From Mytilus edulis (Eukaryota), in contig NC_092356.1 of the NCBI RefSeq assembly GCF_963676685.1, positions 74,586,001-74,650,000 on the forward strand: a DNA stretch of 64,000 nt, written 5' to 3'. Shown here piece after piece: positions 6,358 to 60,302 of this stretch (position 1 is the first letter of the stretch; every line of letters starts with the position of its first letter). The translations under genes were made by a program, and so were the position numbers. Under the pieces are notes generated by a model that made no database searches, had not been told where the DNA came from, and saw nothing but the letters and a program-made list of their open reading frames with translations.

Positions 6358-9300
6358 TTAGGCAAAAAAAGTGGTAGCAAAATGATCCCGTATGCCTTTT
6401 CCGTCCTGTGGACCATTATAGGGTGGCATCTGAGGTTGATTGTCAAACAATTGTTCTTCTGCAACTTCAGGTTCATTCCTCATGATGGCAATATTGTGCA
6501 GAATACCACAAGCAATGATAATTCGGCAAGCTTTATCAGGTTTCATTCGGATCTGGAATACAATTAAAAAACATTTATTTTAAAGTGTGATAGAAATACT
6601 ATTTGTTTGTAGCATGAATTAACCTTGCTCATGAATAAGTCTGAGATTAAGTAAATCTATTACAAAAACGTTAACACTATAATTTAATTAAACAAGAGTG
6701 CACACACTGAAATGTCTCGCCTTCTTTACTAATCATTGATACTATCTTGATAGACCTAAATATAAAGCTTTTATTACAACTGTCACATAAACTCAACATA
6801 AACCAAGAAAATGAAACATTGATCAATGAACCATGAAAATGAAACATTGATCAATGAACCATGAAAATGAAACATTGATCAATGAACCATGAAAATGAGG
6901 TCAAGGTCAGATGAACCATGCAAGGCAGACATGTACAGCTAACAATTCTTCAATACAACAAATATAGTTGACTTATTCCTTATAAAAAAAGAAAAACAGA
7001 CCAAAACACAAACACTTTTATAAACTTAGCAATGGACCGTGAAAATGAGGTCAAGGTCAAATAAAACCTGCTTAACGGACATATAGATCATAAAATATTT
7101 CCATACACCAAATATAGTTTATCTAATGCATAAAGTATTAGAAAAATAAACCAAAACTAACTTTGACCACTGAACCATGAAAATGAGGTCAAGGTCAGAT
7201 GACACCTGTCAACTAGACATGAACACCTTACAATCATTCCATACATCAATTATAGTAGACCTATTGCATATAGTATAAGAAAAACAGACCAAAACACAAA
7301 AACTTAACTATAACCACTTAACCATGAAAATGAGGTCAAGGTCAGATGACACCTGCCAGTTGGACATGTACACCTTAGAGTCCTTCCATACACCGAATAT
7401 ACTAGACCTATTGCATATAGTATCAGAAATATGAACTTGACCACCAAAACTTAACCTTGTTCACTAATCCATGAAATGAGGTCGAGGTCAAGTGAAAACT
7501 GTCTGACAGGCATGAGGACCTTGCAAGGTAGGCACATACCAAATATAGTTATCCAATTACTTATAATAAGAGAGAATTTAACATTACAAAAAGTCTTAAC
7601 TTTTTTTTCAAGTAGTCACAGAACCATGAAAATGAGGTCAAGGACATTGGACGTGTGACTGACGGAAAGTTCGTAACATGAGGCATCTATATACAAAGTA
7701 TGAAGCATCCAGGTCTTCTACCTTCTAAAATATAAAGCTTTTAAGAAGTGAGCTAACACCGCCGCCGCCGCCGGATCACTATCCCTATGTCGAGCTTTCT
7801 GCAACAAAAGTTGCAGGCTCGACAAAAAGGGACCAAATCAAACATAAAGCTGAACAAACAGTCCAACAACTGATGATGTACTGTTACATTCACGATTTAA
7901 TAAAGTTATTGTAATGACTAACTTTGAGCAGTTACCCCAACATGACTACATAATTTGGTTGGTTGTTGGTTGCTTAACGTCCAGTGGCAAATATTTCATG
8001 CATATTCAGGCCGAGAACAAGTTCACAATAAATGCAATAGGTAGATCTTGTCATAATAGAGGCCATTTGGGATGATGGTCGGAGAAGTTTGGACTGCCAC
8101 TGGAAAATGAGGGTATATTGGATAGGGACAGAAATTGTGCCTTGCAACAGGCCACTTACGGGCCCTCAATGAGTCGTTGCACAGGTTCTTAACGTGCTCA
8201 GAGCGTGGCACTCTCTTTACTCGAGACTTGGATTCAACGTCCACATTCTGACCGGACGTGACTGCGAACTTATACATCCCGCACAGCCAAACGGACGCTC
8301 CACTTCAGCAAGCGTTTTACTGTCGGTCGGAAGAAGACCACGTGACCATATTTCTATTCCCCATTCACCCTTGGAGTACATTAAGTTACCGGACTAACAT
8401 CACCAATTTTCCAACTGGATACCTGTTATCAGTACATGTATAATTTTCGGGTTTTGATCTGTGTGCAGATGAATTGTCGATCATTGTGTTCTTGTCCTGG
8501 CTTGATATTTAACGTGTTTCTGATGTCAGCTTTATCAGCCCTTAAATATACAACTGATTTTTCATTTTTTTCCGAGTTTTATTACGTGATAAAAATAAGG
8601 AGAGTTGGTGTGATTGTTAATTTTATAACTAAAATGTATGTATCCTGCAAAGTTAAAATGAAGTCGATGTAAGCAATTATAGGCAACCATACTGTGGTCA
8701 GCAAAAAAAAAAACACCAAAAAACGTATAGTAGCTACATGTATAAAGAAAAGATAGAGAAGGGGACCATTAATACCTTAACCGAAATTTAGAGAAATCGA
8801 AAAATGTACTAATGAAAGATTTAGTAGACAGCCGTCTCACAAGAAAAAAAAAACATGACTTTTAAAATATAAGGGCATACATGGCATATATCATGTCAAA
8901 TATTCATGTTACTATACTGTGATTATTTGTAAAGAATTAATTGTACCTCTGATCCTAGAATGTGAAAGCGCTTCTTCCATATTCCAAATGTCCTTTCTAT
9001 TGTCGACCTTGTTGAGCAATTTCTTCTGTTAAACCTTGCTTGACCTCTACCAGCAGCTGGTTGTCTGTATGGTGTCAGCAAAAACTGTCTGCAGGGATAG
9101 CCACTATCTCCTAACAATACACCTTGTCCAATTCCTTGATATACATTCTCAAGATGTTGTCCTATGGCTGAGGTTCTGAAAACGTGAGAATCATGTGCTG
9201 ATCCTGGCCACCTAGCACTGATGTTGGTGAATCTACCTTTAAACAAAAATATGATAGTTACAAAAGTTAAAAAAGTAGTTCCATAATTCATTAGTCAAGG

Positions 9301-12073
9301 CAAAGCAAATCAGTGATTGTGATTAAGTATGGTGACCCAAGCTGTTTATTTCCGTGTCATTTAATTTCTTGTGATTTGTCCCATTTAAGCAATCATTACC
9401 ACATCTTCTTTTATGTGCATACATATAGTTTGTCCATTATAGTTCTAGTCATTAAAATGTTAGCTGAATTTGCAATGTGATGAAAGCAAAATATAAAATT
9501 GAGAAAGGAAATGGTGAATATGTCAAAGCGACAACCACCCGACCATAGAGCAAACAACAGCCGAAGGCAACCAATGGGTCTTCAATGTAGCGAGAATTCC
9601 CGCACCCGTAGGTGTCCTTCAGCTGGCCCCTAAAATATGCATAATAGTACAGTGATAATGGACGTCATACTAAACTCCGAATTATACACAAGAAACTAAA
9701 ATTTAAAATCATACAAGACTAACAAAGGCCAGAGGCTCCTGACTTGGGACAGGCGCAAAATTGCGGCGGGGTTAAACATGTTTATGAGATCTCAACCCTC
9801 CCCCTATACCTCTAGCCAATGTAGAAAAGTAAAAGAATAACAATACGCACATTAAAATTCAGTTCAAGAGAAGTCCGAGTCTGATGTCAAAAGATGTAAC
9901 AAAAGAACATAAATAAAATGACAATAATACATAAATAACAACAGACTACTAGCAGTTAACTGACATGCCAGCTCCAGACCTCAATTAAACTGATTGAAAG
10001 ATTATGTCTTCATCATATGAATATCAGGTACAATCCCTCCCGTTAGGGGTTTAGTATCATACTATCATAAAATATATGAGAAGAACATAACCCGTGTCAT
10101 GCCAACAACTGTTATTTTTTTAAAGAAATAAATGTGTTTAGTTCCGATGCAAAGACCCTATCAGTGAATCAATGTTAAAGCCAAAATATGCAATCTTTAA
10201 TGACCTGACAACAGTATCGTAACTATATCCCCTTTTAATAAGTCTATTTAAAGGTTTTGTTAGTTTCTGAGGAGAATACTGACATTTTTGTGCTTTATAA
10301 AGAATATTTCCATAAAATTTTGGATGTGAAATACCTGAACGTATAAGATGTCTGCATGTTGAGTTATATTTACGAATTATTTCCTTATACCGGTGATAAA
10401 ATTTAGTAAATGTTTTGACCAGTTTGTGATATCGAAAACCCTGGTGTAATAATTTTTCAGTAATACATAAATTTCTCTCGCTAAAATCTAATACATTGTT
10501 ACATACACGAGCGAATCGTACAAGTTGAGATATATAAACACCATAAGATGGTGACAAGGGAACGTCACCATCTAAAAATGGATAATTAACAGTAGGAAAT
10601 GAAAAATCATCTCTTTTATCATAAATTTTTGTATTAAGCTTCCCGTTTATGATATAGATATCAAGATCGAGGAAAGGGCAGTGGTCATTGTTATCATTAG
10701 CTTTATTTAAAGTAAGTTCTACAGGATAAATTTCTTTAGTATACATACTGAAGTCGTCATTATTTATGTATAGTTTTATAAACAATCAGTCAGATAAACA
10801 ATACATCGGGGATCAAAGCAGTTAATTATATATATGCTCCCTTAACATTTAAAAAAAAAAATATTTTGAACAATGACTGGCTTATTTTCCAATCAAAAAG
10901 AATGGGGGAGGCGAACTTGATATTTGGATGACAGATTGGACACTTATTTTTTGTTCAGTTGTCACGTTTTTCAGTTTTGTATGGGTTTTTTTCAAGTACG
11001 TGTTGTTGTTGTTTTTTTTTTTTGTTTTTTTTTTTTGGGGAGGGGGGGGGTCTTCTCACTGAAACATTTAGAGGTAGATCTAGAATTTCTTCAAACTGCA
11101 AGGGGCACACTTTTTGTTGACGTTTCAAAGTTTATAAGCCTGACTGTGACAAATTCTACCTAAAGATAAGGGTTGGCAAAATCTATATAACTATTTTGAT
11201 CAATAAATTTATGTTCATTAACTCTTAGCAGTTCACTCGATCCAGCATATTTAAAAGTGAAACAGTAAAAACAGAAAAGTGAAACGGTAAAATTAGAGAC
11301 ACATTATATGTATATGTCTCTGGTAAAAAACAATGAGTCTACGGATCCAATAGAAAGTATGACAAGATTGAGTTGTCTTTCTTTTTCCATCGATTTTCAA
11401 ATTAGCTGAAAAGCAGTTCAACAGAAAACCAGCCATGTGTATGGTCAAGGACGATTGAAGATGTCAAGAAAAAGCACGCACACAAAGCATGTTGTAAATA
11501 TAAAATAGGTATAATACAGTGTTTTAAATTACCTTCATGGTCACAAATGGCTTGTACGTTGATGCTGTGGAACCCCTTTCGGTTAACAAATGCTGGTTCA
11601 TCAATGCTAGGCCCAGTAATCCGTATGTGAGTCCCATCAATGCATCCAACCACGTTTGGAAAACCAGCCTTTTCATAAAACCCAGCCCTTATTACGTTCT
11701 TCCTCTGATTATCTGGCCACGATATGAAATCATCTTTCATGGCAACTAATGAATCCGTCACACGGTTAATCACCCGAGATACAGTTGATTTGTCAAATCC
11801 CATTGTGTCCCCAACTACTTGCAAGTGTGATCCACTTCCATAAAATCTCAAGGCAATCATAATCTGTTGTTCCACTGAAAGGGCTGTCTCCTTGTTTGTC
11901 CCACGCTCAAGATCCCCTCTCATTAAATCTGACAGGTATGCAATAGTCTCCCTGCCAAATCTATATCTCTGCCTTAGCTCCTCATCAGAAAATTCCCTTT
12001 CTAGAGGGTCAAAACCGCGAAAATGTCGCTCTCTTCTTACAACAGGTGGTTGAAACAAAACATTGACAGCCAT
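6358..12073 (-). CDS. Harbinger (HARBI1-like) DDE transposase; exons 12073-11533, 9236-8947, 6552-6358; 341 aa
   Basis: Catalytic motifs GCIDGTHI (D), LGDSGYP (D), [12 protein letters not shown] (E), plus [23 protein letters not shown] and [14 protein letters not shown] splice sites in phase (G|GT, then phase 0) give 1026 nt uninterrupted. Confidence 0.93.
6690..7826. mobile_element. Non-autonomous Helentron/HINE-like element with central ~146-bp tandem repeats, in transposase intron 2
   Basis: AACAAG at one end; about 6 units marked by ACCATGAAAATGAGGTCAAGG; (CCG)n microsatellite; terminal hairpin GTCGAGC-TTT-CTGCAAC-AAAA-GTTGCAG-GCTCGAC followed by an A-run. Confidence 0.75.
7955..8400 (-). 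mobile_element. SINE, probably with a Deu/Nin-like central domain; 5' boundary approximate
   Basis: Minus-strand tail ...ATATTTGCCACTGGACGTTAAGCAACCAACAACCAACC. The segment TTCTTAACGTGC...GGATTCAACGTCCACATTCTGA resembles the Deu/Nin domain as recalled. Confidence 0.5.
9727..9817 (-). ncRNA. Twister ribozyme, P5-type permutation, core intact
   Basis: GGCUAGAGG-UAUA-GGGG-GAGGG-[UUGAGAUCUCAUAAACAUGUU]-UAA-CCCC-GCC-GCAAUUUUGC-GCCUG-UCCCAAGU-CAGG-AG-CCUCUGGCC. Matches the twister core (UAA, P2, GCC, P4 with UCCCAAG loop, GAGGG). Predicted cut between 9774 and 9773. Confidence 0.8.
10013..10079 (-). promoter_or_regulatory. Type II eukaryotic SECIS element
   Basis: Minus strand: helix I UCAUAU/AUAUGA; core AUGAU...UGAU; 11-bp helix II AGUAUGAUACU/GGGAUUGUACC (2 mismatches); apical AAA; mini-stem CCC/GGG. 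About 60 nt after the RT stop codon. Confidence 0.8.
10138..10766 (-). pseudogene. Reverse transcriptase C-terminal (RT motifs 6-7/thumb) fragment of the Penelope-like element
   Basis: EIYPVELTL...CPFLDLDI...[10 protein letters not shown]...[15 protein letters not shown]...KLLHQGF. The fragment starts just after the position expected for YxDD, so it is truncated. The frame is open to TAA at 10138. Confidence 0.88.
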
Positions 12074-13833: not shown

Positions 13834-14687
13834 TATTTTTAATACTTAATATAAAACCATGTTAAAATTCTTTAAATATTCATTTATTTTTGCTTCTAAT
13901 TTATTTCTAACTCAACCCAGTAATTCTGTTTGCAATTATGATAAAAAGTGGCAAAACAAAACTAAATATTGTATGACGGCAGATCGTAAAGTTACTTTAG
14001 CCTATCATATGTGAACTATAAATTGTAAATCTATATACCCGAATAGTAAATCAGCCATATCTTTTTATGTCAGGATTCAGTGTATAAAACAATGGATTGC
14101 AATATTGCAATACAATAAGAACAAATATTTGTTCGCATAAATTTAGGGTGCCAGCATGTCCAATTAAAATACTGATACGTAACAAAATTTCAGTAGTTTT
14201 GATACCTCATGCTGACTTGTACAACAAAATTATTTGACCGCATTGACCAAAACTGACCATATGTGCACTTTAATTTTTAAATCTTTATACCCGCATCGTA
14301 AATCAGCCATATCTTTTGTGTCAGGATTCAATGTACAATACAATGGATAGCAATATTGCAATATAATAAGAACAGATTTTTGTTCACATAAATTTAGGGT
14401 GCAAGCATGTCCTAAATACCCAAAATACTGATACGTAACACAATTTCAGTAGTTTTGATACGTCATGCTGACTTGTACAACAAAATTATTAGACCGCATT
14501 GACCAAAACTGACCATATGTGCACTTTAATTTGGAAATCTATATACCTGCATAGTAAATCAGCCATATTTTCTATGTCAGGATTCAATGTATAATACAAT
14601 GGACAGCAATATTGCAATATAATGAGAACAAAATTTTGTTCGCCAAAAATTTAGGGTGCCAGCATGTCCTCTTTTTTCTCCAAAATC

Positions 14688-17174: not shown

Positions 17175-17780
17175 TACTGATACATAACAAAATTTTAGTA
17201 GTTTTGATACCTCATGCTGACTTGTACAACAACATTATTTGACCGCATTGACCAAAACTGACCATATGTGCACTTTAATTTGTAAATTAATATACCCGCA
17301 TAGTAAATCAGCCATATTTTTTTATGTCAGGATTCAATGTATAATACAATGGACAGCAATATTGCAATATAATAAGAACAAGTTTTTGTTCGCATAAATT
17401 TAGGGTGCTAGCATGTCCTCTTTTTACTCAAAATACTGATACGTTACAAAATTTCAGTAGTTTTCATACCCCAAGCTGACTTGTACAACAAAATTATTTG
17501 ACCGCATTGACCAAAACTGACCATATGTGAACTTTAAATTGTCAATCTATATACCGGCATAGTTAATCAGCCATATTTTTAATGTTGGGATTCACTTATA
17601 ATTACAATCAACAGCAATATTGTAATATGATAAAAACAAATTTTTGTTCGCATGAATTTTATAGAATACCAGCATGTCCTTTTTTTATTCAAAATATTGA
17701 TACGTAACAAAATTTTAGTAGTTTCCATACCTCAAGCTGACTTGTATTACAAAATTATTTGACCGCATTGACCAAAACTG

Positions 17781-32282: not shown

Positions 32283-32604
32283 ATTAAGACTCATCAGTGA
32301 CGCTCATATCAAAATATTTATAACCCAAACAAATACAAAGTTGAAGAGCATTGAGGATCCAAAATTCCAAATAAGTTGTGCTAAAAAAGGCTAAGGTAAT
32401 CTATGCCTTGTATAAGAAAATCCTTAGTTTTTCGAAATATTCAAAGTTTTGTAAACAGGAAATTTATAAAGATGACCACATAATTGATATTCGAAGTGCT
32501 GACTACTGGGCTGGTGATACCCTCGGGGACGAAACGTCCACCAGCAGAGGCATCGACCCAGTGGTGTAAATAGTTATCAAAGGTATCAGGATAATAATTT
32601 GGTA

Positions 32605-32646
32605 CGCCAAACGCGCGTTTCGTCTACATAAGACTCATCAGTGACA
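32605..32646 (-). ncRNA. Minimal type I hammerhead ribozyme with palindromic stem III
   Basis: UGUCA-CUGAUGA-GUCU-UAUGU-AGAC-GAAA-CGCGCG-UU-UGGCG. Core intact; GUU cleavage triplet; cut between 32610 and 32609. Confidence 0.88.
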
Positions 32647-35605
32647 CTCATATCAAAATAGTTATAATACATAAGGTCAGTTTTGATTGAAGCGGTCAAA
32701 TAATTTTGGTGTACAAGTCGGCATAAGGTATATAAAGTAATGAAATGTGTTACGTCTAAATTTTTTGAATAAAAGGAAAACATGCTGGCATTGTGAATTG
32801 ATAAGAACACAATTGTGTTGTTATTGTATTGCAAAATTGCTATCCATTGTATTATACATTTAATCGTGACAAAAAAATATGGCTGATTTACTACATTTAC
32901 TTGCGGGTATATAAAATTACAAATTAAACATATGGTCAGTTTCTTTCGACGGGTTCAAATAATTTTGTTGTACAAGGTAGCATGAGGTATCAAAACTACT
33001 GAAATGTGTTACGTATCAATATTTTGAATAAAAAAAAAAACATGCTTGCATTGTAAATTTATGCAAACATAAATGTGTCAATATTGCTGTCCCTTGTGTT
33101 TTGCATTGAATCCTGACAACTAAAATATGGCTGATTTACTTTGTTGGTATATAGATTTACAAATTACACATATTGTTAGTTTTTATCTACAGGGTCAACT
33201 ATTTGTGTTTTACAGGTCAGCATGAGGTATTAAAACTACTGAAATTTTGCTGCGTATCTAAATTTTGAATAGAAGCTGCACATGCTGGCACCGTAAATTT
33301 ATTTTAACATAAATTTATTGTTATTTCATTGTAATATTGCTGTCCATTGTGTTATACATTGAATTCTGACATAAAAAAATATGGCTGATTTACTATGATG
33401 GTATATAGATTTACAAATTAAAGTGCACATATAGTAAGTTTTGATCGATAGGGTCAAATCATTGTGTTGTACAAGTAAGCATGAGGTATCAAAACTACTG
33501 AAATTGTGTCACGTATTAATACTTTGAATAACAGAAGGACATTCTGGCACCTTTATTGTATGCAAACAAAAATTGTTGTTATTGTATTGCAATATTGCGG
33601 TTCATTGTATTCTATAATGAATCCTGACATTAAAAATATGGCTGATTTACTAGCCGGGTCTCTAGATCTAAAAATTAAAGTGCACATATGGTAAGTTTTG
33701 GTCTATGCGGTCCATTAAACTTTGTTGTAAAAGTCAGCATGAGGTTTCAAAACTACAGAAATTTTGTTACGTATCATACTTTGAATAACAGGAGGACATT
33801 CTGGCACCTTAAGTTTATGCGATCAAAATTTGTTGTTATTTTATTGCAAAATTGCTGTCCATTGATTATATGTTGTATCCTGATATAAACAATATGGCTG
33901 ATTTACTATTTGTGTATATAGATTTACAAATTAAAGTGCACATATCGTCAGTTTTGATCGACAGGGTCAAATAATTTTGTTGTACAAGTCAGCATGAGCA
34001 AACAAAACTACTGAACTTTTGTTACGTATTGATACTTTCAATGTCAGGAGGTCATGCTTGCAGCCTAAATGTTTGTTGACAAAAATCTGTTGTAACTGTA
34101 TTGCAATATTGCTGTCGTTTATATTATATATTGTTTTCTGACATATAAAAATATTAATGATAAATTTACTATGTGGGTATCAATATTTACAAATCAAAGT
34201 GCACATATGATCAGTTTTTATTGAAGCAGTGAAGTAATTGTGTTGTAGAAGTCAGCTTAAGGTATCAAAACTACTGAAATTTGTTACGTATCTATATTTT
34301 GAATAAAAGGGAAAATGCTGGCACCCAAAATTTATGAAAACAAACATGTGTTGATATTGTATTGGAAAATTGCTGTTCATTGTATTATAAATTGAATCCT
34401 GACATAACAAATATGACTGATTTACTACATGTACTATGCGGGTATATAGAATTACAAATTAAAGTGCAGATATGGTCAGTTTTGGTCGATGTGTTTAAAA
34501 ACAATTATTGTATGAGTCAGCATGAGGTATCATAACTAATAAAATTGTGTTACAAATCAATATTTTGAATAAAAGGAGGACATGTTAGCACAGTAAATTT
34601 ATGCATACAAAAATGTGTTTTTATTTTATTGCAATATTGCTGTCCATCGTATTATGTATTAAATCATGACATAAAAATATGGCTGATTTACTATGTGGTT
34701 ATATAGATTTACAAATTACAGTGCACATATGGTCAGTTTTGATTGAAGCCGTCAAACAGTTTTGTTGTACAAGTCAGCATAAGGTATTAAAACTATTAAA
34801 ATTTGTTACGTATCAATAAATTGAATAAAAGGAGGACATGCTGGCACCCAAAATTTATGGGAACAAAAATTTGTTGTAATTGTATTGCAAAATTGCTGTA
34901 CATTGTATTATAAATTGAATCCTGACTTAACAAATATGACTGATTCACTATAGCTACATGTACTATGCGGGAATATAGAATTACAAATTAAAGTGAACAT
35001 ATGGTCAGTTTTGGTCAATGTTTTTTAAATAATTTTATTGTATCAGTCAGCATGAGGTATCAAAACTAATGATACTGTGTTACGAATCAATATTTTGAAT
35101 AGAAGGAGGACATGCTAGCACAGTAAATTTATGCAAACAAAAATGTGTTGATATTTTATTGCAATATTGCTGTCCATCGTATTATGTATTGAATCCTGAC
35201 ATAAAAATATTACTGATTTACTATGTGGGTATATTGATTTACAAATTAAAGTGCACATATGGTCAGTTTTGATTGAAACAGTCAAATAATTTTGTTGTAC
35301 AAGTCAGCTTGAGGTATCAAAACTACTGAAATTTGCTACGTATCAATATATTGAATAAAAGAAGGACATGATGGCACCCTTAATTTATGAGGAAAAAAAT
35401 TTGTTGTTATTGTATTGCAATACTGTTGTCCATTGTAGTTTATATTAAATTATGACATAAAAAATATGGCTGATTTACTATGTGGGTATACAGATTTAAA
35501 ATTAAAGTGCACATACATTTTTATGGTCAGTTTTGGTCGATGACGTCAAATAATTTTGTTGTATAAGTCAGCATGAGGTATCAAAACTACTGAATTTTTG
35601 TTACA

Positions 35606-35988
35606 TATAAAAAAGTAGATGTGGTATGATTGCCAATGAGACAACTATCCATAAAAGACCAAAATGACACAGACATTAACAACTATAGGTCACCGTACGG
35701 CCTTCAACGATGAGCAAAGTCCATACCGCATAGTCAGCTATAAAAGGCCCCGATAAGACAATGTAAAATATTCAAACGAGAAAATTAACGGCCTTATTCA
35801 TTGTTATTTATGTGAAAAAATGAAAGAAAAAACAAATATGTAACACATAAACAAACGACAACCACTGAATTACAGGCTCCTGACTTGGGACAGGCACATA
35901 CATAAATAATGTGACGGGATTAAACATGTTAGCGGGATCCCAACCATCCCCCTAACCTGGGACATTGATATAACAGTACAGCATAAGA
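35606..35988 (-). mobile_element. Short twister-bearing retroelement (family 2)
   Basis: Reverse complement of 59935-60302. Tail-only fragments at ~5176-5270, 6090-6130, 28920-28950, 29975-30240 and 54430-54528. Confidence 0.75.
35873..35959 (-). ncRNA. Twister ribozyme copy (repeat family 2), partly mutated
   Basis: CAGGUU-AGGGG-GAUGG-UUGGGAUCCCGCUAACAUGUU-UAA-UCCC-GUC-...-GCCUGUCCCAAGUCAGG-AGCCUG. GAGGG is mutated to GAUGG. Confidence 0.7.
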
Positions 35989-36935
35989 ATATCAATATAT
36001 TGATCAAAAGGAGGACATGCTGGGACTCTTGACTGGTGCAGACAAAATTTTGTAGTCATGTGTTTTAATAATGCTTTCATTTTGTAAGAATATCAATATA
36101 TTTATCAAAAGGAGGACATGCTGGGACTCTTGACTGGTGCAGAAAATTTTTTGTAGTCATGTGTTTTAATGATGCTTTAATTTTGTATAATAAATTCTAT
36201 CCTGAAAATAAAATATTGCTGATTGTATCTACATAAATCAAGGTCGTGTAACTAATAATGATGTATTTATGTAACTAACATTTTATATACGTCCTTGCAT
36301 AGATATACATAATTAAGTTAACAGTTAATTTAATAAAATGACTATATAATAGATATACATGATTAAACTGCAGTTTTGAGTAGCTATAGATGAAAAATTA
36401 ATACATTACGAAATCACAGCCCTGTAAGCCATAGTCAATGTAACGCCCAATGTGACGTCACATGTAAATTTCTAAAATGTGTTCCGAAAATTCATAGAAT
36501 TTGGATGAAATTCAAGATTATATTTGTATGACTCATCTAACTTATATTAATAACAGTGAAAATTATAATACTAATTAATATTTAATTGAAGTAGTTATTA
36601 GATAATTAATTGTATTATCTAGCTTTGTGGTTGTTTCTTCTGATCAAACTGTGAACCATTTATGACTGGTTCGAAGTTAACTTATTGCAATAGCGGACCT
36701 GTTTCCATGTTATTCTTATGGAAGACATAAAAACAGTCCTAGGATCAAGTCCGCTAGATTTTGGTCCTATGGCTGGTCAGAGCAGTCCTAAATCCGGTCA
36801 CTGGTTAACTTTGACCTGTCCAAAATGACTGGTTATCAAGTACAATTGCTGTACAGGTTCGGACTGCACCCATCTATATATTTGTATTGTAGTCCTGTCA
36901 TGTAATATTGTCATTTAAATGATGATATCAACATT

Positions 36936-37027
36936 GGCATTAAAGCGGGAGGTTTGGCATTTCACAAAACCAGGCTCAACCCACCCTTTTTATTTCAAAA
37001 TGCCCTGTACCCAGTCAGGGAAATGGC
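36936..37027 (+). ncRNA. Twister-like ribozyme copy (family 3), degenerate
   Basis: AAAGCGGGAGGU...CAACCCACC...CCUGUACCCAGUCAGG; L4 and the palindromes are mutated. Confidence 0.55.
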
Positions 37028-37577
37028 CATTGCTATATTTCAGTTTCTGTATGTGTTACATTTTAATGTTGTGTTTCTATTTTGTCGTAGTAATCATAGA
37101 TTTGATGCGTTTCCCTCAGTTTTAGTTTGTTACCCGGCTTTGTTTTTTGTCTGTCGATTTATGAATTTTGAACAGCGGTATACTGATGTGGCCTTTGTTT
37201 GTATAATATTATATACGTCATATTAATTAATTATCGTAGTTCAATTTAAAAGTTAAGCGTTTTATTTCGTCTACATTGATATAAAAGAACACCGGGGTAT
37301 TAAGATTGACAATATCTTAGATCAATGAATTTGAAACAAGAAAGGAAACATTGTACATTACAATACGATAAATAATTAAAATAAAATATAAAATTCCCCT
37401 TTCGAGAAATTAAAAAGCAAATACTAAAACACGTTCTTTTTCCGTTTTTGGTTTTCGAGAAATCATAAACGATAAACGGAAACAGTCTTTTTTTTTTTAT
37501 TTCAAAAAGAAAAACAAAGAATGGACACAATTGTACCATGAATACAAGGACCATTAAGACGATTTAATATTTCGAAA

Positions 37578-40285: not shown

Positions 40286-42696
40286 AATTATCTGCTGAGT
40301 ATAGCAAAACATCTAGGCGATCAATCAGTTAGAAACAAGTTTCAATCATTCCTAACATAACAGAATTATGAATATAAAAAAATTGATAACTCATAGTAGA
40401 CGGCCTGTAAACTACAAGATTAAATTAGCTAACTTGATCTACAAAAACATTTGATCAGATTAGGGACTTTAACTTTAAAAAACGATATAGAGACAAACTA
40501 AATTAACGGTGTTCAATCAATCAAACTAAAATCAGGGGAACACAAGAAATACTGAACTGCAGAAAAAAAAAAACAAACGCCATCATACATCAATGTTTAT
40601 TTTGCTGCTTTTTGTATGATTTATTCATATTTTATTACTTTTAAAGAGACGCTACATGTTTGTATTAATGTTGCAACTCGATATCCAGTATTTTGTTTCA
40701 TTGAGAGAATACAACACAATCCGCATACAACAAAAAGAATAATTAATGCATACATATTTAAATGAACGAGTTGATATCCATTCAAAGTTTCTGTTTAAAG
40801 GTATGCAAATGTTATTTTTCATAATATGCAAGGTAAGACATATTCGACTAAAAATAAATTAGTAGCCATGCTGAATCATCTATTTATAAACTTGCAATTG
40901 CCCGTTGTGGTGTTTTTGTGGCAAATTAAAAAAAAGACGAACATCCCTACTTGTTCCTAATAATCTCGTTTTGAGAAGAAAATTGATTTTTTTTGTAATC
41001 GAATATGGCTACAAGGATATATGTAAACCTCAAAAGACAGCAACGTAAGAACACCAAAAAAAAAAAAAACAAACACAAAACACAATTAAAACAAAACGTA
41101 AAAAATGTATAATGTAAAAAAGGAAAATGTTGGTAATAATCAAGATGCATAAGTTATCATACTTCGTAAGTTGTTGCACCTTGTTTGCACCTTTATTACT
41201 GTTGTAGTTATATTATTTATCTATGAAGTTTGATTCAATAAACATTGAATTCCTACAGTAAAATTTAGGAAAGTATAGTTTATATTTTTTGTTTGACCTT
41301 TTATCCTATGTTTTGGGTTAAAGGCCCAATAAAACATATAAACTATAACTTTATTTTCAACCTGGCGTAGGGTAACGGTAAGTAGTAGAGACTGCTTTAT
41401 GAGCATGCATTACACTAAAATAAAAATCACACAGTCATGTCATAGCATAATCAGCAGACAAACAAACTACCCCTACAAATGTTTGTTAGTATAATGATTA
41501 TCTAAAATAAATTATGTTATGGTCAGTTTGACACTCCAATTTTATAAAAATAACCTTTTATATTGTTGTTTTCGAAAAATTTGTATGGAGACTATAAACG
41601 TATTGCTATTCATTTTAGACCTCTCCTCCAAATTATTCCCCACAAGCGCCAGTCAAGACTATTGATTATATCATCCGGGAGATCAATCAATTAAAAACAG
41701 GCTCCAATTATTCATAAAAGTACCAATGTAATACAAGCGGGAACTCATTTACACAGTGGTTAAAATCAATTTAATAGCTTAAGTTATCTACCAAAAATAT
41801 GTGTAATATTTAGTTTTTTTAATTCTTACAAATGGAACATATATAAATTTTACAACTCAATGATTATTTTCACATTTGTTTGTTAGTTTACTTCATGTAA
41901 ATATTGTTATTCAGACTATGTTCCTTAAAATGTGCTTAAATCGCCTAGTATGTTATTTTGAAAGAGGGAAACAAGACTTACCTGGACTTCTGTAATAAAC
42001 TAAATCCGACAACAATTCAGACTATTTATTGATACGTCTGTTTATTTAAATCCTGTTTGATAGTTTTCTATGGTAAGAAAATTCTCCAGAAAGTGATTAT
42101 TTTACATACGAGACTCAGTATTTAAATCAATTATGTTATGAGTGCATGCGTGTTAGGTACTAACGAATGTATTGGACATCAAGATCACATGTCGTTATAA
42201 CTCACTACCCTAGTTTCAATAGATGATACTGTATAAATAACTAAACTCTGACCTTGTCAAAAATAAAAGTCTTAGTGGTGTACATTATACTGCACCTGAT
42301 GTTCATTAACAAACTGTAATTCTCTTCAGTGATTTTCCAGATCGGCACTTAAAGTTAACCTCTTAGGAACATTAACCAACTCGGGTAGTTATTAGTTATT
42401 CATCGTTACTTGATGATGCCACCGATGTAAATAAAACCAGGTTTGTCATCGTCAAAGCACAGTAGTTCATTTTAATAGTTAGGAATCATTTGTTTTTGCT
42501 TTAAATTTAAAAAGAAATGAAATTGAAATTGAATTGAATTGAATTGAGCTATGTACAATACAATAGCAATTACATTAATCCCTGTCTTGGCCTGATGCCT
42601 TTAGTTTTCTATTATTCTTGTGTTTCTTTGTCGAATACGTTCTCCTATTTATTTGTATTGTAGTCCTGTAATATTATGTTGTCATTTTAATGTTAT

Positions 42697-48304: not shown

Positions 48305-48518
48305 TGTGACGGATGGGTTAACTTAATGTCTAGAAGGCAGTAAAACAACGTCTGGTTCGTTTGATCGTATAATCTCAACTCAATATAGTAACATGATACC
48401 TAACAATAGCACAACGTTAACAGAAGATAATGATGACGTTAACAATGTGAATGGAAACGGCGTTAAAAGTAGTGTTAACGTTTTACGCGTAAGTTAAACT
48501 GTCTCTAAATCACCGACA
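48305..48518 (-). repeat. 5' LTR of the BEL element
   Basis: Adjacent to the PBS and the gag start at 48280. Confidence 0.95.
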
Positions 48519-48534
48519 GTTATATTTAACATTT

Positions 48535-48625
48535 CCATTAAAGTGCGAGGTTTGGCATGCCACAAAACCAGGTTCAACCCACCATTTTTTCTTTAAAAAT
48601 GTCCTGTACCAAGTCAGGAAAATGG
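48535..48625 (+). ncRNA. Twister-like ribozyme copy (family 3; paralog of 52967-53060)
   Basis: Near-identical to 52967-53060; lies just right of the BEL insertion site. Confidence 0.62.
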
Positions 48626-49277
48626 CCATTGTTATATCATAGTTCGTTTCTGTGTGTGTAACATGTTAACGTTATGTTTCCGTTGTGTCGTTTGTTTTCT
48701 CTTATATTTGAGTGTGATTTCACATTACTAAAAGACGTGTCACGGTACTTTTCTATCCCAAATTCATGTATTTGGTTTTGAAGTTATATTTGTTATTCTC
48801 ATCTTGAAAATAAAGGAAAGAGAAATAAACGAATGATAGCCATTCAAAGGTAACAAGTTAATAATATTTTTATACACCATACGCACGCTACATCCACACA
48901 AAACTATGCTCAGATGTAAAAAGTTTGAAAGCCATAATAACTACCATGTTGACGATCGTCGAGGACCAAAAGTTCCAAAAAGTTGTGAGGCCAGGGGTAT
49001 CCTTCTTGGACAAAACCATCGTTATTATCAAGAATAATTCATAGTTTTGCAAACAGTAAATTTAGTTGGATGGCTATTTAATAGATATACATATACATAG
49101 ATTTTGGTCCTATGGCTGGTCAGAGCAGTCCTAAATCCGGTCACTGGCTAACTTTGACAAGATCAAATGACTGGTTATCAAGTTAATTTGCTGTACAGGT
49201 TCGGACTGCACCCATCTGTATATTTGTATTGTAGTCCTGTCATGTAATATTGTCATGTTAATGTCTTAATCAACATT

Positions 49278-49369
49278 GCCATTCAAGCGAGAGGTTTGGC
49301 ATTTCACAAAATCAGGCTCAACCCACCATTTTTATTTCAAAATGCCTTGTACCCAGTCAGGGAAATGGC
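49278..49369 (+). ncRNA. Twister-like ribozyme copy (family 3), degenerate
   Basis: Paralog of 36936-37027 in the segmental duplication. Confidence 0.5.
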
Positions 49370-52300
49370 CAATATTATATTATTTTTTTCTGCGTGTGTT
49401 ACATTTTAATGTTGTGTTTCTATTTTGTCGTAGTTATCTTAGATTTGATGCGTTTCCCTCAGTTTTAGTTTCTAACCCGGCTTTGTTTTTTTGTCTATCG
49501 ATTGATGAATTTCGAACAGCGGTATACTGCTGTTGTCTTTATTTATAATACCGGGGTATTAAGATTGACAATATCTTTGATCAATGAATTTGAAACAAGA
49601 AAGGATACATTGTACATTACAATACGATAAGTAATTAAAATGAAATATAAAATTCCCCTTTAGAGAAATTAAAAATCAAACATTACATTCTTTTTCCGTT
49701 TTTGCTGTTCGAGAAATCATAAACGATAAATGGAAACAGTCTTTTTTTTTTATTTCAAAAAGAAAAAAAAGAATGGACACAATTATACCATGTAAACAAG
49801 GACCATTAATACGAATTAATTTTTAAAAATTTGTTTTAAAGAAAAATTATCTTCCACTAGAAGAGCGGACAGTTATTGCCTTTTTTATTAATATTTTATT
49901 AAGAATACTGACATTGTGAAACAAACAAAAAATAAATTAACATACGTATAGTCTCAGAATGGTGATGCCACATATCCTAGACTAATTTATGATACCCTTA
50001 TCACATAGTTTATGGTATTTTTAGAAACACAATTGAGTCTAATTAAACAGTGCACCAAATCTAGCAACTGATTACCCATAATTATGTTACTTATCAATAC
50101 AGTCCCGATGCAGAAATGCAGGCAGATATCTGAAGTAATCACAGATAACATGTGTACTGTATATATTCAGGACCATATCAATTCCATTTGACATTTAATA
50201 CATTTGTACATTTTTGAGCTCTTCAAACGTCAAGTTTCAAAGGATTTGATGACAACAAAATACTAACACTGTTATACAAAAATTGCACAAAATCCCTTCA
50301 TAGCATTCATATGCAGTTACGCTACACCTTCAATGAAAGTCAGTATAATGATTGTTCAAGATGAGTATCAACTCGTATGCCTATAATTGAAATAAGAATT
50401 TTCACTGTTATAAAATTTTAAAGAAGATTATGTATCACAATTCGCCATAATAATTGCTTTTGCAAATTTCCTCCTAATTCGTTCCAACATATCACAGTCC
50501 AGATTATTGTACAACCTATTGTTGATACAGAAAATATTCCTTTCGAACCATAATGCCTATGTGAATTAGCTGCTGAGTATAGCAAAGCATCTAGGCGACC
50601 AATCAGTTAGAATCAGGTCTCAATCATTCTTCACATAACAGAATTATGAATATAATACAATTGATAATTCATAGTAGACGGCCTGTAAACAACAAAATTA
50701 AAGTAGCCAACTTGATCTACAAAAAACATTTGGTCAAATTAGGGACTTTAACTTTTACAATCAAAATAGAGACAAACTAAATTAACGGTGTTTAATTAAT
50801 CAAACTAAAACCAGGCGAACAAAATAAATACTGAACTGCAGAAAAAAACAAACTCCGTCATACATCTATTTTTATTTTACTGTTTTTTGTATGATTTATT
50901 TATTCATATTTTATTACTTTTAAAGAGAAGCTACATGTTTGTATAAATGTTGAAACTCGATATCCAGTATTTTGTTTCATTGAGAGAATACAACACAATC
51001 CGCATACAACATAAAGAATAATTAATGCATACATATTTAAATGAACGAGTTGATATCCATTCAAAGTTTCCGTTTAAAGGTATGCAAATGTTATTTTTCA
51101 TAATATGCAAGGTAAGACATATTCGACTAAAAATAAATTAGTAGCTATGCTGAATCATCTATTTATAAACTTGCAATTGCCCGTTGTTGTGTTATTGTGG
51201 CAAATTCAAAAAAAGGCGAACATTCCTGCTCGTTCCTAATAATCTCGTTTTAAGAAGAAAATTGAGTTTTTGTAATCGAATATGGCTACAAGGATGTATA
51301 TAAACCTCACAAGACACCAACGTAAGAACACAAAACAAAACAAAACAAAACACAAAACAAAACAAAACAAAACATAATAATGTATAATGAAAAAAAGGAA
51401 AATGTTGGTAATATTCAAGATGCATAAGTTATCATACTATGTAGGTTGTTGCACCTTGTGTGCACATGTATTACTGGTGTAGTTATATTACTTATCTATG
51501 GAGTTAGATTCAATACACATTGAATTCCTACAGTAAAATTTTGGAAGTTATAGTTTATATTTTTTGTTTGACCTTTTACCCTATGTTTTGGGTTAAAGGC
51601 CAAACAAAACATATAAACTATAAAATCATTTTCAATCTGGCGTAGAGTAACGGTAAGTAGTAGATGCTGCTTTATGAACATGCATTACACTGAAATTAAA
51701 ATTACACAGTCAGTTCATAGCATACATCAGCAGACAAACAAACTATCCCAACATATGTTTGTTAGTATAATGATTGAATAAGATAAAGTATATTATGGTC
51801 AGTTTGACACTCCAATTTTATAAAAATAACAATTTATATTCAATTTGTTGTTTTCCAAAAGTGTGTATGGAGACTATAAACGTATTACTATTCATTTTGG
51901 ACCTCTCCTCCCAATTATTTCTTACAAGCGCCAGTCAAGACTATTGATTATATCATCCGGGAGATCAATCAATTAAAAACAGGTTCCAATTATTCATAAC
52001 AGTACTAATGTAATACAAGCGGGAACTCATTTACACAGTGGTTAAAAATCAATTTAATAGCTAAAGTTATAATATATGTAAGATTTAGTTTTTTTTTATT
52101 TTAACAAATGGAACATATATCAATTTGACAACTCAATGATTATTTTCACATTTGTTTGTTAGTTTACCTTCATGTAAGTATTGTTATTCAGACTATGTTC
52201 CTTAAAATGTGCTTACATCGCCTATGTAATTGTGAAAGAGGGAAACTAAACTTACCTGGACTTCTGTAATAAACTTAATCTGACAACAATTGCTACTATT

Positions 52301-52859
52301 TATTGATACTTATGTTTATTTAAATCCTATTTGATAGTTTTCTATGGTAAGAAAATTCTTCAGAAAGTGATTATTTTACATACGAGACTCGGTATTTAAA
52401 TCGATTATGTTATGAGTGCATGAGTGCATGATAGATACCCACGGATGTAGTGGACAACAAGATCACATGTTGTTACTACCCTAGTTTGAATACATGATAC
52501 TGTATAAATAACTCAACTCTGACCTTGTCAAATATAATAGTCTTAGTGGTGTACATTATACTGCACCTGATGTTCATTAACAAACTGTAATTCTCATCAG
52601 TGATTTTCCAGATCGGCACTTAAAGTTAACCTCTGAGGAACGTTAACCAACTCGGGTAGTTATTAGTTATTCATCGTTAATTGATGATGCCACCGATGTA
52701 AATAAAAACATGTTTGTCAAATTCAAAGCACAGTAATTAATAGTGAGGAATCATTTGTTTTTGCTTCAAATTAAAAAAGAAATGAAATTGAAATTGAATT
52801 GAATTGAGCTATGTACAATATAACAGCAATTACATTAATCACTGTCTTGGCCTGATGCC

Positions 52860-53410
52860 TTTTATTATCTATTATTCTTGTGTTTCTTTGTCGAATACGT
52901 TCTCCTATTTATTTGTATTGTAGTCCTGTAATGTTATGTTGTCATTTTAATGTTAAATTTAACATTGCCATTAAAGTGCGAGGTTTGGCATGCCACAAAA
53001 CCAGGTTCAACCCACCATTTTTTTCTTTAAAAATGTCCTGTACCAAGTCAGGAAAATGGCCATTGTTATATCATAGTTCGTTTCTGTGTGTGTAACATTT
53101 TAACGTTGTGTTTCCGTTGTGTCGTTTGTTTTCTCTTATATTTGAGTGTGAATTCACATTACTAAAAGACGTGTCACGGTACTGTTCTATCCCAAATTCA
53201 TGTATTTGGTTTTGATGTTATATTTGTTATTCTCATCGGATTTTGTCTAATGCTTAGCCTGTTTCTTTGTGTGTTACATTTTAATGTTGTGTCGTTGTTC
53301 TCCTCTTATATTTCATGCGTTTCCCTCAGTTTTAGCTTTTTATCCCGAATTTGCTTTTTGTCAATAGATTTAAAAGTGTTGAACAGCGGTATACTACTGT
53401 TGCCTTCATT
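52860..53410 (+). mobile_element. Short twister-bearing retroelement (family 3)
   Basis: Other copies at 36880-37200, 42600-42696 + 48519-48803 (split by BEL) and 49220-49545. Common 3' end GAACAGCGGTATACTRCTGTTGCCTT. Confidence 0.7.
52967..53060 (+). ncRNA. Twister-like ribozyme copy (repeat family 3)
   Basis: GCCAUU-AAAGUGC-GAGGU-UUGGCAUGCCACAAAACCAGGUU-CAA-CCC-ACC-AUUUUU..AAAAAU-GUCCUG-UACCAAGU-CAGGA-A-AAUGGC. Compensatory changes relative to family 1; P2 imperfect. Confidence 0.65.
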
Positions 53411-53879: not shown

Positions 53880-56740
53880 ACAATATCCCTAATGCGCCTT
53901 GAAATGAGGAACTCAAAATTCACGTGTAAACAAACACATTCTGTGAGTGATATTGGACATGTTTCTATAATAAACAAGTGTCTGAGCTTAACCATTTGTG
54001 TTAATTTAGAAAGTAGGGGAACACATAATAAATGTGTAAAATCTGTGTAGCTATTAAATGTGTCAAAGTATTTAATTTTCAAAATTTAAAAAGAACGTAT
54101 TGTGTAATAAATGGGATTGTTTACCATGAGGAGCCGCATCACAAAAGGATACCCCGAAAATTTGACCACATATGTTAAAATGTCTCAGCAGTGAAACAAG
54201 CCATCAAAATTAACGATATGGACTGAGCAACAGACGAAAACGTTACCATTACCGCCTATGGATAAACTATTACGCATCTTCACCCAATTTAAAAGATAAA
54301 TTTCAGAAGTTTTCAGACTGATCTATGAATGATATCATCTTGTACACTACAAAAAAATTGTAAAAATCATGCTTTTAAAATGCATTACTGGCACGGAGCT
54401 GAACACTTTTTTAGGCACAATCATAATTAGATATAGGAAGATGTGGTGTGAGTGCCAATGAGACAACTCTCCATCCAAATAACAATTTAAAAATTAAACC
54501 ATTATAGGTTAAAGTACGGCCTTCAATAACTTTGTTAACCCTCGAAATATCCGAAAGGAATTTAATTTGTTTACTATATTGAAAAAGGCAAGAAATAACT
54601 TTAGAATATTTTTAAATTGTAAGTAAATATGACACCATATTGTCTTTGTTATGTAAATATCACTCTGGTCTACAAGAATACCTGATAATCAAGGGAGATA
54701 ACACACTTCATACGAGTAAAGTGAGATCCATCATCACATGTGCTTTTATCGAATGATTTGACCCCTGGTCAATAGATACCATATGCAAATCAACAGAAAA
54801 AAACATTAACATGTATTAAGAAAATCATGAATTATTTTTTTAATGCACTCGAGCAAAACTAAACATATTGTCATTTCTCAGTGAAAAGGGGGAGGGTCAA
54901 ACCTTTTTGAAAACAATATTTCTGCACCTATTCAACTATTAAGCTAGTTAACTACTACTCCTTTCTTCTAATATAAAAGGTTTAAATGAAGGTGGCTAAG
55001 CCACAAGGGAGAAGCATTTGTCTTTCTTTCGTATAAAATTTTATGACGTCAGACACACAAATCAATGAATGTGTTTGTATATAGATGTTTTTGTTTTCTG
55101 TGAAATTGTTCCTTTTAAAATTGATATACGATGATGACTGATGTAACAATATTCTGACTATTTTATTTATTGTGTCTGTTTAGTTAACGCATCAATGTAA
55201 ATGTAACGGAATTTGATGAGACTGTCATCAAAGTGAGAATGTTAGCGCTATAAACATGATAAAAACTGGTTTAATCCATCATTTTCTACATTTGAAAATG
55301 CCTGTACCAAGTTTTTTTTTGTCATATTTCAGTTCCAGACATATCATTACTTTTTAATCTGAGATGGCAAACTAGAGGTTTTAAAAAGTACTGAATAACA
55401 GGTAAACATTATGTTTTATTAGGCAAGCTCTAAATTATTTATTTATGGTATTTATGCAATTGAAATTAAAGTATGTATGTTAAAAATATGCTAATATGAA
55501 AACTGTTGCTACGGTCTTGATATTATATGAAAATGATTGGTTACTGATCTTTTCGACTCAATATTTCGTGTTTAATTTTGCAGCAACTGTTTCACACGTT
55601 ACACTACAAACTATATTAAGCACTATTTTGATCTGTATTTAATGACGCCATAAAACATGTGATGTCACAATGTTTCCTTTAAAACCTCATATGGATTTCT
55701 TACTGATAAAAGGTTTTCACTGAATTACATGTAAAAACCATGTTTTGTCTCAAATAGAATTATGTGAAAGGACAAGTTTTGAAAATTTACACTTCATTGC
55801 ACTCTAATTATATGATAAGAATGACTTGTCCAGTAGTTTAGAGTGGTTACCAAAGTATTAGATACCAGATTTTCACTAGTAAGAATAATTATTTTGGTGT
55901 TGTATTTTTTATGAAATCTTCATGTTTGCATAATTTCTCTGTCAACATGCACTTTTAGGCACGAAAAAAAATTATAGGATGCTTTAACAGGGTCGGTGTA
56001 TTGTAATTTAAGTTTATCATCAGAAGTTTCGTCCTTGTTTTGACTAGTGAAGATAAACTGGAAGAAATTAATTATACATACACATTGTATTCAAAATAAA
56101 TGAATATGGCGACAAAAATGTCATTGCCTTATAGTGCTTAAACAACTTAATTTTTTTTTTAGAAATGGACAAAAATACACAGATTTGTTAAACATGTTAT
56201 ACCGATGAAGATCACATAAAAATGTTTGGAAAAATCAGAACAATGGATTTCAATATGGGACAATATCCCTAATGCGCCTTGAAATGAGGAACTCAAAAGT
56301 CACGTGTAAACAAAAAATCTCTGTGTAGTGATATTGGACATGTGTCTATGATAAACAAGTGACTGAGCTTAACCATTTGTGTTAATTTGGTAAGTAGGGA
56401 CACAGAATAAATGTGTAAAATCTATGAAGCTATGAAATGTGTGTAAGTACTAAATTATAATCCTGGTACCTTTGATAACTTTTTAAAGTATTAAATTTTC
56501 AAAGAACTTATTGTGTTAAAAATGGTTTTTTTTTACCATGAGTAGCCTCATCACAAATTAATAGTCGGGGTTTGCTGATTTACCGGAAAAGAAATCTCAC
56601 TTCATACCCCGAAAATTTGACCACATATGTGAAAATGTCTCAGCTTCGAAACGAGCCGTCACACATATCCAAGTTAACGATATGGACTGAGCAACATACC
56701 ATTCCCGTCTATGGAGAAACTTATACGCATCTTGACCCAT
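53880..56740. repeat. ~400-bp dispersed direct repeat (53880-54290 and 56260-56740)
   Basis: Both copies start CAATATCCCTAATGCGCCTTGAAATGAGGAACTCAAAA. Confidence 0.85.
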
Positions 56741-59395: not shown

Positions 59396-59934
59396 AGGCC
59401 ATACATTGACCTATAATGGTTTAGTGCGTTATACATGTATGACTTTGTAATGCTTATTGTGTTTATGGAAAACAATGGGAAAATGTTGCTTAACATCTTG
59501 GGATATATATTTAGAAGGCATTTATTCAAAAGCAGATATAATTGATTTGTAGAAAAACATGAATAAGGGCAGATGATCAACCATTATAGTACAAGTCTTT
59601 GATAAACCACAATATATTTGTCATCACTGACGTATCAATGTTGCTTTTGTATACATGGTATAAAAATCCAACTTGGGTTTCTCATCTAAACTTGTTTACA
59701 TCGTGTTACATTATCCAATATAGCTAGGCCTGTTATAGGTTTTTCATTATCACACTTATGGGGAACTGATTTTGCTCATTGGTGAAGGATGTACAGTTAC
59801 TAACAATTACATCACTTCACTTGAAGTTCCTATATCGTTCAATTTTCATCCATGGAGATCCCTGTCTTGGTTTACGGTTGATGGTTGTCTTATTGAAATT
59901 CATACCACATCTCCTTATTCTGGTTATCATACAG

Positions 59935-60302
59935 TATACATGTTATACCAATGTCCCAGGTTAGGGGGAGGGTTGGGAACTCGCTAACATGTTTAACCCC
60001 ACCACATTATTTATGTATGTACCTGTCCCAAGTCAGTAGCCTGTAATTCAGTGGTTGTCATTTGTTTATGTGTTACATATATTTGTTTTTTGTTCATTTT
60101 TTTACATAAATAAGGCCTTTAGGTTTCTCGTATGAATTGTTTTACATTGTCTTATCAGGGCCTTTTATAGCTGACTATGTGATATGGGCTTTGCTCATTG
60201 TTGAAGGCCGTACGGTTACCTATAATTGTTAATTTTTGTGTCATTTTTGGTCTTTTGTGGATAGTTGTCTCATTGGCAATCATACCACATCTTCTTTTTT
60301 AT
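59935..60302 (+). mobile_element. Short twister-bearing retroelement (family 2)
   Basis: Ends in GTTGTCTCATTGGCAATCATACCACATCTTCTTTTTTAT; homologous to 35606-35988. Confidence 0.75.
59957..60043 (+). ncRNA. Twister ribozyme copy (repeat family 2)
   Basis: CAGGUU-AGGGG-GAGGG-UUGGGAACUCGCUAACAUGUU-UAA-CCCC-ACC-...-ACCUGUCCCAAGUCAGU-AGCCUG. Confidence 0.7.

Follow-up and report, generated by a model that had tools for sequence, protein, structure and literature searches.

Can a twister-type ribozyme core in a bivalve retroelement do without its helix P1, and what stands in the place of that helix? The question is raised by a short segment at positions 9727-9817 (minus strand) of a 64,000-nt stretch of Mytilus edulis DNA (NC_092356.1, positions 74,586,001 to 74,650,000; the whole of this stretch is referred to below as the window, and its coordinates are used throughout). 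The segment belongs to a Naiad-type Penelope-like element, and a preliminary description had read it as a twister in which P1 is replaced by two adjacent palindromes. As judged from its sequence, the module is a twister variant without P1, with covarying palindromes, carried by Naiad Penelope-like elements. The two palindromes are called palA and palB here, and the layout of the segment, read as minus-strand RNA, is as follows.

9727-9817, minus strand: type-P5 twister-like ribozyme core, recognised by an RF02684 match, by direct reading and by covarying P3, P5 and T1
9817-9808 and 9736-9727, minus strand: helix P5, 5' strand GGCUAGAGGU and 3' strand GCCUCUGGCC
Between the P5 5' strand and the P2 3' strand, minus strand: AUA, by direct reading
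9804-9801 and 9771-9768, minus strand: helix P2, 3' strand GGGG and 5' strand CCCC
9800-9796, minus strand: GAGGG, followed by U at 9795
9795-9774, minus strand: insert at the position of P1
9785-9794, minus strand: palA, a 10-nt self-complementary tract UGAGAUCUCA that begins one base 3' of GAGGG
9784, minus strand: U linker between palA and palB, by direct reading
9774-9783, minus strand: palB AAACAUGUUU, with the conserved core AACAUGUU at 9775-9782
9773-9774, minus strand: predicted scissile bond U(9774)^A(9773), by alignment to the twister-P5 consensus UAA
9773-9772, minus strand: AA, followed by CCCC and then by GCC at 9767-9765
9764-9755, minus strand: P3 hairpin
9753-9738, minus strand: helix P4 and its loop, CCUG / UCCCAAGU / CAGG, then A

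When the 121-nt region was searched alone, Rfam scored the core at 23.4 bits (E 0.0025) against RF02684, below the gathering cut-off of 37.6; run on the whole window at the gathering and E-value thresholds it returned no twister match, and multi-kilobase searches likewise miss the core. Genome-wide searches, with RF02684 and with the DNA itself, also came back empty, their words being too frequent or their filters too stringent. In the Rfam alignment the twister-P5 model is aligned end to end, and GAGGG, UAA, GC(C) and GUCCCAAG are all present. Helices P2, P4, P3 and the open P5 all form, perfectly so in families 1 and 2, and P3, P5 and the pseudoknot T1 covary between families (alignments A1-A3): P5 is made of four different helices across families, and T1 switches from GAGGG/UCCC to GAGGU/UACC with compensation, families 3 and 4 having GAGGU together with UACCAAG. 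A canonical P1 is excluded, because the UU that follows GAGGG faces the UU that precedes U-1, and the approximately 20 positions that the model assigns to the P1 hairpin are occupied by 21 nt unable to pair as P1. The core of palB ends directly 5' of the base preceding the cleavage site. Thus, the earlier observation of UU opposite UU where P1 is expected holds on the minus-strand RNA, and the replacement of P1 by two palindromes is borne out by direct reading and by the RF02684 alignment.

At one locus alone the palindrome pair is insignificant, because pairs of 8-nt palindromes within 16 nt number 40 in the AT-rich window against about 21 in shuffles; the signal is positional conservation together with compensatory change across families. 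In all lineages a single base separates GAGGN from palA, and position -2 is the last of palB; the linker between the tracts is 1-6 nt long, and the core-proximal ends of both never move. At least nine lineages, drawn from several hosts, have these two positions occupied by self-complementary tracts that differ in sequence. The palA versions are UGAGAUCUCA in family 1, UGGGAUCCCG in family 2, UGGCAUGCCA in family 3a, UGGCUAGCCA in family 3b, UAGCGCUA in family 4a and UAGCUAGCUA in family 4b. Metagenome contigs, when scanned, also proved to carry the module downstream of Naiad-like open reading frames (ORFs), with palA being UGGGAUCCCA (L103, L155), UGAGUACUCA (L090), GGCGCGCC (L087), or GGCGCC or GGCGCU (L122 and about 80 JYMV01 contigs); reverse transcriptase (RT) identity to the window-family element is 79-84% for L103 and L155, and about 40-46% for L122 and L087. 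For palB, four versions occur across lineages, AACAUGUU, AACUAGUU, AACCAGGUU and AAUCUGAUU.

In alignment A1, palA is 95.1% paired and four of its five pairs have changed on both sides; in A2, palA is 96% and palB 97.5% paired, with the central palB pair occurring as AU in six cases and UA in four; and in A3 the values are 93.7% and 96.4%, one palB pair being CG in nine cases and UA in four. Double changes affect two to four of the five palA pairs per alignment and, pooled over A1-A3, the four positions p2-p5, the outer p1-p10 pair varying on one side only, from U-A to U-G. By the same count, the accepted helices P3 and P5 of these alignments are paired no more fully. A parsimonious chain requires, for palA, no fewer than six double substitutions plus two insertions or deletions that are central and symmetric, and for palB two to three double changes; several of the changes fall on the innermost pair, whose bases are adjacent, or on the one flanking it, where intrastrand pairing is impossible. 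Moreover, G-U is tolerated in the palindromes (UGGGAUCCCG, GGCGCU), which points to pairing at the level of RNA rather than DNA.

The copy in the window is a fragment of a much larger element, whose features are listed here together with the gene that it interrupts.

9488-10766, minus strand: 5'-truncated copy of a Naiad-type Penelope-like element, 1,279 bp, with 99.06% identity (blastn) to the 4031-bp unit of L063
10138-10785: ORF remnant of the Naiad copy
10014-10078, minus strand: SECIS-like (selenocysteine insertion sequence-like) hairpin between the ORF stop and the twister, RF00031 at 30.9 bits against a gathering cut-off of 35
8923-9291 and 11402-12073, both minus strand: halves of a Harbinger-type DDE_Tnp_4 ORF, split by the Naiad fragment and other inserted DNA

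The fragment, which sits inside this Harbinger-type DDE_Tnp_4 gene, comprises the last 988 nt before the cleavage site and a 286-nt tail. The 4031-bp unit is arranged head to tail, as many pairs and triplets of copies lie 4031 bp apart, with about 150 matches at 99% identity. Its ORF of about 1000 amino acids carries N-terminal GIY-YIG-like, CxC and DKA motifs upstream of the RT blocks (L063 ORF pieces); an N-terminal GIY-YIG, CxC, and DKA in place of DKG are diagnostic of Naiads, of which selenoprotein types occur in clams (PMC8557442). The Naiad ORF (L063 5317-8460, minus strand) contains five in-frame TGA codons, one inside a CHAKK-U-LTCP zinc-finger-like motif and one at the expected GIY-YIG cysteine, and the SECIS-like hairpin recurs in L055 and L063 at 30-31 bits, about 60 nt after the stop codon. 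By these motifs we classify the element as a selenoprotein-type Naiad, as known from clams. Searched against Pfam and PDB sequences, the pieces of the ORF gave no domain or useful match, and the ESM Atlas neighbours of the ORF, which are a lead only, were RVT_1 and HTH_animal clusters.

Within the unit, about 320 nt separate the stop codon from the twister, after which another 286 nt lead to the 3' end of the element, and Rfam found no hammerhead in the 4031 bp at E up to 5. The predicted module thus occupies the position, in the 3' untranslated region (UTR) or pseudo-long terminal repeat (pseudo-LTR), that the hammerhead has in other Penelope-like elements (PMC6765202). Exact matches to the core pattern number 11,499 in the genome for families 1 and 2 together and 2,774 for family 3, with family 4 in addition, so that the total of twister-like modules is well over 10,000. 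The flanks of the families are unalignable and the core is kept. Both DNA and RNA depth peak two- to fourfold on the module of about 130 nt relative to its flanks (L063 848-984), and L063 has loose ends at 849 and 981-983, other subfamilies sharing just this block at 95% identity or more; the depth peak therefore indicates a module common to subfamilies with different flanks.

Where, then, does each palindrome find its partner? Taken alone, the insert at the P1 position (21-25 nt) has a minimum free energy (MFE) of 0 to -1.7 kcal/mol and no cis helix (RNAfold). Self-duplexes of palA reach -11 to -18 kcal/mol across families, the window palA giving -14 against 0 for the monomer, and those of palB -7 to -10 kcal/mol, about -7 to -8 for the window palB. 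Pairing of palA across families is far weaker, and the pairing matrix is dominated by its diagonal. A long-range cis partner was considered and rejected: each palindrome occurs once per 4031-nt unit, and no second copy of palA, of palB or of their central 6-mers was found elsewhere in the unit. Since neither palindrome recurs in the unit, the partner would have to be another copy, either the neighbouring tandem unit or another molecule, and from these sequences and energies we regard trans pairing of both tracts between copies as very likely. The properties that the preliminary description had attributed to the palindromes are thus confirmed, namely poor folding in cis (0 to -1.7 kcal/mol) and self-complementarity that outlasts sequence change (94-96% paired for palA and 96-98% for palB, with double changes); their conservation across genomic copies, which it had named as a check, is seen in family versions kept genome-wide, and the parallel it drew with the dimeric hammerheads of Penelope-like elements is strengthened, the host itself being a Penelope-like element.

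We propose that each tract would pair with its counterpart in a second copy, which may be the adjacent unit of a tandem transcript or a separate RNA. In this scheme palA would act as a strong, family-specific dimerisation helix, and palB as a weak helix that places the strand 5' of the scissile bond in a duplex, a trans stand-in for P1, and ribozyme folding and cleavage would be tied to having two copies together. From a tandem transcript, cleavage would release an RNA of unit length, 4031 nt, that begins with AACCCC and could be ligated into a circle, while a copy on its own, or a unit already circularised, would escape cutting. Such a dimer logic has precedents in earlier proposals on double hammerheads and on the dimeric hammerheads of Penelope-like elements (PMC6765202; PMC7761336). 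We put the probability of the full chain, from trans pairing through the palindromes to dimer-dependent folding and cleavage, at roughly 0.4. That Naiads carry an obligate-dimer twister, the first natural twister to need two copies for its active fold, with the palindromes as dimerisation codes, is in our view doubtful.

A number of points weigh against dimer-dependent cleavage. Neither a pile of read ends nor joints were found at the cleavage site in the X24 RNA-seq raw reads and contig runs; X24 RNA coverage lies on both strands and is proportional to DNA copy number. The reads give cleavage no support, nor do they count against it. Copies 5'-truncated at the cleavage site are not in excess, 146 having a non-T and 7,434 a T at position -1 (1.9%), and this non-T share is at the level of point mutation. 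Twisters without P1 are reported to cleave, if inefficiently (PMC8501958), and by this analogy dimerisation may not be needed for cleavage. There is also the matter of geometry: if two molecules were joined through both tracts, palA to palA and palB to palB, the pairing would have a crossing topology with linkers of 1-6 nt, which may not be feasible; two separate palindromes cannot rebuild the connectivity of P1, unlike the single one of the hammerhead stem III. In families 3 and 4, P2 is imperfect, a bulged C being needed and 78.6% of cells being paired, and in family 3a P2 has a C-C mismatch beside the cleavage-site AA; given this imperfect P2, families 3 and 4 may be catalytically inactive. 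In the most abundant family of the JYMV01 contigs palA is just the 6-nt GGCGCU with G-U ends. Finally, the copy at 9488-10766 stands alone as a truncated fossil, with no same-family partner nearby.

The main rival accepts the pairing between copies and assigns it a different role: the palindromes would be a dimerisation signal of the retroelement, used in template switching, tandem formation or co-packaging, and cleavage would be independent of them. We take this to be possible, at odds well short of even. The covariation that argues for trans pairing argues for it equally, the palindromes behave as family-specific codes, Penelope-like elements form partial tandems, and with P1 dispensable in twisters the palindromes may merely lie in the tolerant P1 position. 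Against it speaks the register, since the core-proximal ends are held exactly at 40% RT identity despite a linker of 1-6 nt, which suggests structural coupling to the core, and palB adjoins the scissile bond. A core that has become an inactive relic, or that serves the 3' UTR as a structural or protein-binding module, with palindromes that bind a dimeric element-encoded protein and co-evolve with it in each family, is unlikely. The reads, with their lack of any sign of cleavage, agree with such a module, as do the imperfect P2 of families 3 and 4 and the Rfam score under the cut-off; however, the catalytic-core nucleotides and T1 are conserved, with compensation between GAGGG/UCCC and GAGGU/UACC, the G-U pairs (UGGGAUCCCG, GGCGCU) fit RNA pairing and not a DNA or protein site, and the letters change freely so long as pairing stays.

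Two further explanations dispense with a partner molecule of RNA. We find it very improbable that the palindromes are a by-product of mutation at the DNA level, through template-switch correction of quasi-palindromes, or an AT-rich coincidence: short palindrome pairs are indeed common in the window (40 against about 21 in shuffles), but coincidence does not account for self-complementarity of the same positions in nine or more lineages and several hosts, the swaps of central adjacent AU to UA are impossible by hairpin-templated correction, central insertions and deletions are symmetric, and decayed copies lose the palindromes. Just as little credence can be given to the insert folding in cis as two mini-hairpins or as an alternative P1-like helix. 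In some families RNAfold does give hairpins of 3 bp closed over GAUC or CAUG, at -0.7 to -1.5 kcal/mol, and the MFE structure of the whole RNA pairs UUGAG with UUUAA; yet the energies are near zero, compensatory changes fall in the would-be loops (palA pairs 4-7 and 5-6, and the central pair of palB), and neither family 3 nor the metagenome families keep the alternative helix. Dimer-dependent folding and cleavage through the two palindromes remains the reading that we prefer.

Several further copies of the module are present in the window.

35855-35989, minus strand: family-2 copy, decayed (GAUGG; UAAUCCCGUC), with GGGAUCCC at 35934-35941 and AACAUGUU at 35923-35930
59927-60061, plus strand: family-2 copy, palA mutated to GGGAACUC, palindromes at about 59973-59993
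48508-48642, plus strand: family-3 copy with GAGGU, UGGCAUGCCA and AACCAGGUU at 48553-48574, and loop UACCAAGU
52942-53076, plus strand: family-3 copy with UGGCAUGCCA and AACCAGGUU at 52986-53007
55200-55320, plus strand: family-4 copy, decayed, with UAGCGCUA at 55243-55250, an insertion between the palindromes and the P4 3' strand lost
36909-37043, plus strand: family-3 copy, decayed, its palindromes broken; a segmental duplication has placed a second example at 49251-49385

The palindrome pairs previously listed for families 1 to 3 were found at their loci. For family 4 the listing stood in part: UAGCGCUA is present at 55243, and the second palindrome given, 'AAACUGGUUU', did not hold up, as this is a decayed copy with an insertion and the genome-wide partner is AACCAGGUU. 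The family-3 copy at 52942-53076 is an independent insertion that shares only 286 bp with the copy at 48.5 kb. The copies at 36909-37043 and 49251-49385 belong to one segmental duplication and are non-independent, and a 'broken-palindrome subfamily' at 36.9 kb and 49.3 kb was rejected in favour of a single decayed copy within that duplication. Likewise, a single copy with UGACAUGUCA (L025) was not counted, as neutral decay among about 2,800 copies could produce it. The palindromes are lost in dead copies, namely at 59.9 kb and in the one duplicated copy at 36.9/49.3 kb.

Hammerheads were also observed. A minimal type-I hammerhead of the Penelope-like-element type lies at 32604-32647 (minus strand; 27.1 bits against a gathering cut-off of 34), with the palindromic stem III ACGCGCGU, and a second, truncated hammerhead box about 340 nt downstream, at about 32300 (minus strand), gives the look of a retrozyme-like tandem unit. 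Hammerheads of this type occur elsewhere in the genome (L044, L036). In family-3 elements a hammerhead of the Penelope-like-element type lies about 130 nt upstream of the twister-like motif (L036 1681-1724 and 1454-1555, both minus strand; family-3 flank alignment), and two ribozyme classes are therefore found in one short element. At G000:C1:5262284-5262770 (minus strand) three family-4b twister-like motifs stand exactly 207 bp apart, an array that may be a small tandem 'twister retrozyme'. In L122 3340-3520 (plus strand), a divergent Naiad-like element, the outer CAGUGACAGCCGGAA ... UUCCCGGUUGUUGACUG could lengthen the P5 stem. Elsewhere in the window a satellite with a period of about 257-259 bp forms a main array at 33079-35608 (9.7 copies, 77% identity) and shorter arrays, some of them inverted, at 1278-1927, 14006-14670 and 17175-17780; segmental duplication relates 40286-42695 to 50564-52955 and about 36.7-38.5 kb to about 49.1-50.1 kb, at about 88-91% identity; and a mir-552 hairpin match at 51552-51619 (plus strand; 34.7 bits against a gathering cut-off of 100) is probably a transposon inverted repeat.

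How does the module compare with known systems? The type-P5 twister was reportedly described by Roth et al. in 2014. With this class (RF02684) the Mytilus module shares the conserved nucleotides, P2-P5, T1 and the circular permutation that opens in P5; it differs in having two loopless palindromes instead of the P1 hairpin and in residing in a eukaryotic retroelement. The double hammerheads of avocado sunblotch viroid (ASBVd) and newt satellite 2 are said to go back to Forster et al. (1988). In these double hammerheads, as in retroviral dimer initiation sites, self-complementary RNA pairs copies and ties cleavage or packaging to multimers, but the self-complementary parts belong to hairpin loops or to stem III of a hammerhead, and no twister is involved (PMC6765202).

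The minimal type-I hammerheads of Penelope-like elements have a palindromic stem III and act as dimers, for which the tandem layout is thought to be helpful (Cervera and de la Pena 2014; Lunse et al. 2017; PMC6765202). They and the module described here have in common the superfamily, the tandems, the 3' or pseudo-LTR position, a palindrome in place of a helix-closing loop and the proposed dimer logic, while the ribozyme class differs, and in the hammerheads one palindrome makes a continuous intermolecular stem III that restores the fold. T-variant twisters, in which P1 is weakened or absent, are found at the 5' end of Perere-3 in Schistosoma (PMC8501958); they too are retrotransposon-associated twisters with weak or no P1, but they are of type P1, lie at the 5' end of the element, take the 5' strand of P1 from the target-site duplication and have no palindromes. 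As to the host clade, the Naiad paper reported no canonical hammerhead and left the twister unmentioned (Craig et al. 2021, PMC8557442); our element agrees with Naiads in its motifs, a body of 3.4-4.4 kb, tandems, very high copy number in bivalves and, in some, selenocysteine and SECIS, and differs in the twister-type module at the equivalent 3' position. We found no paper joining the twister with Penelope-like elements, and nothing relevant joining twister ribozymes with bivalves.

In bivalves, few retroelements are as abundant as Naiads, which have been described as lacking the hammerhead typical of other Penelope-like elements. The modules score below the Rfam gathering cut-off and hence have gone unreported in annotation. 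With a twister-type module at the position of the hammerhead, it would seem that the superfamily generally requires a self-cleaving ribozyme and that two unrelated classes fill this need. The covarying palindromes are sequence-level evidence of RNA-RNA pairing between copies, and as natural 'codes' that differ between families they offer a testable system for asking why the ribozymes of Penelope-like elements work in pairs. If the proposed mechanism is true, cutting to unit length would be confined to transcripts that are tandem or multi-copy and belong to one family, the products of which might then be circularised to act as templates, and an obligate-dimer twister would be the counterpart, in another ribozyme class, of the dimeric hammerheads found in other Penelope-like elements.

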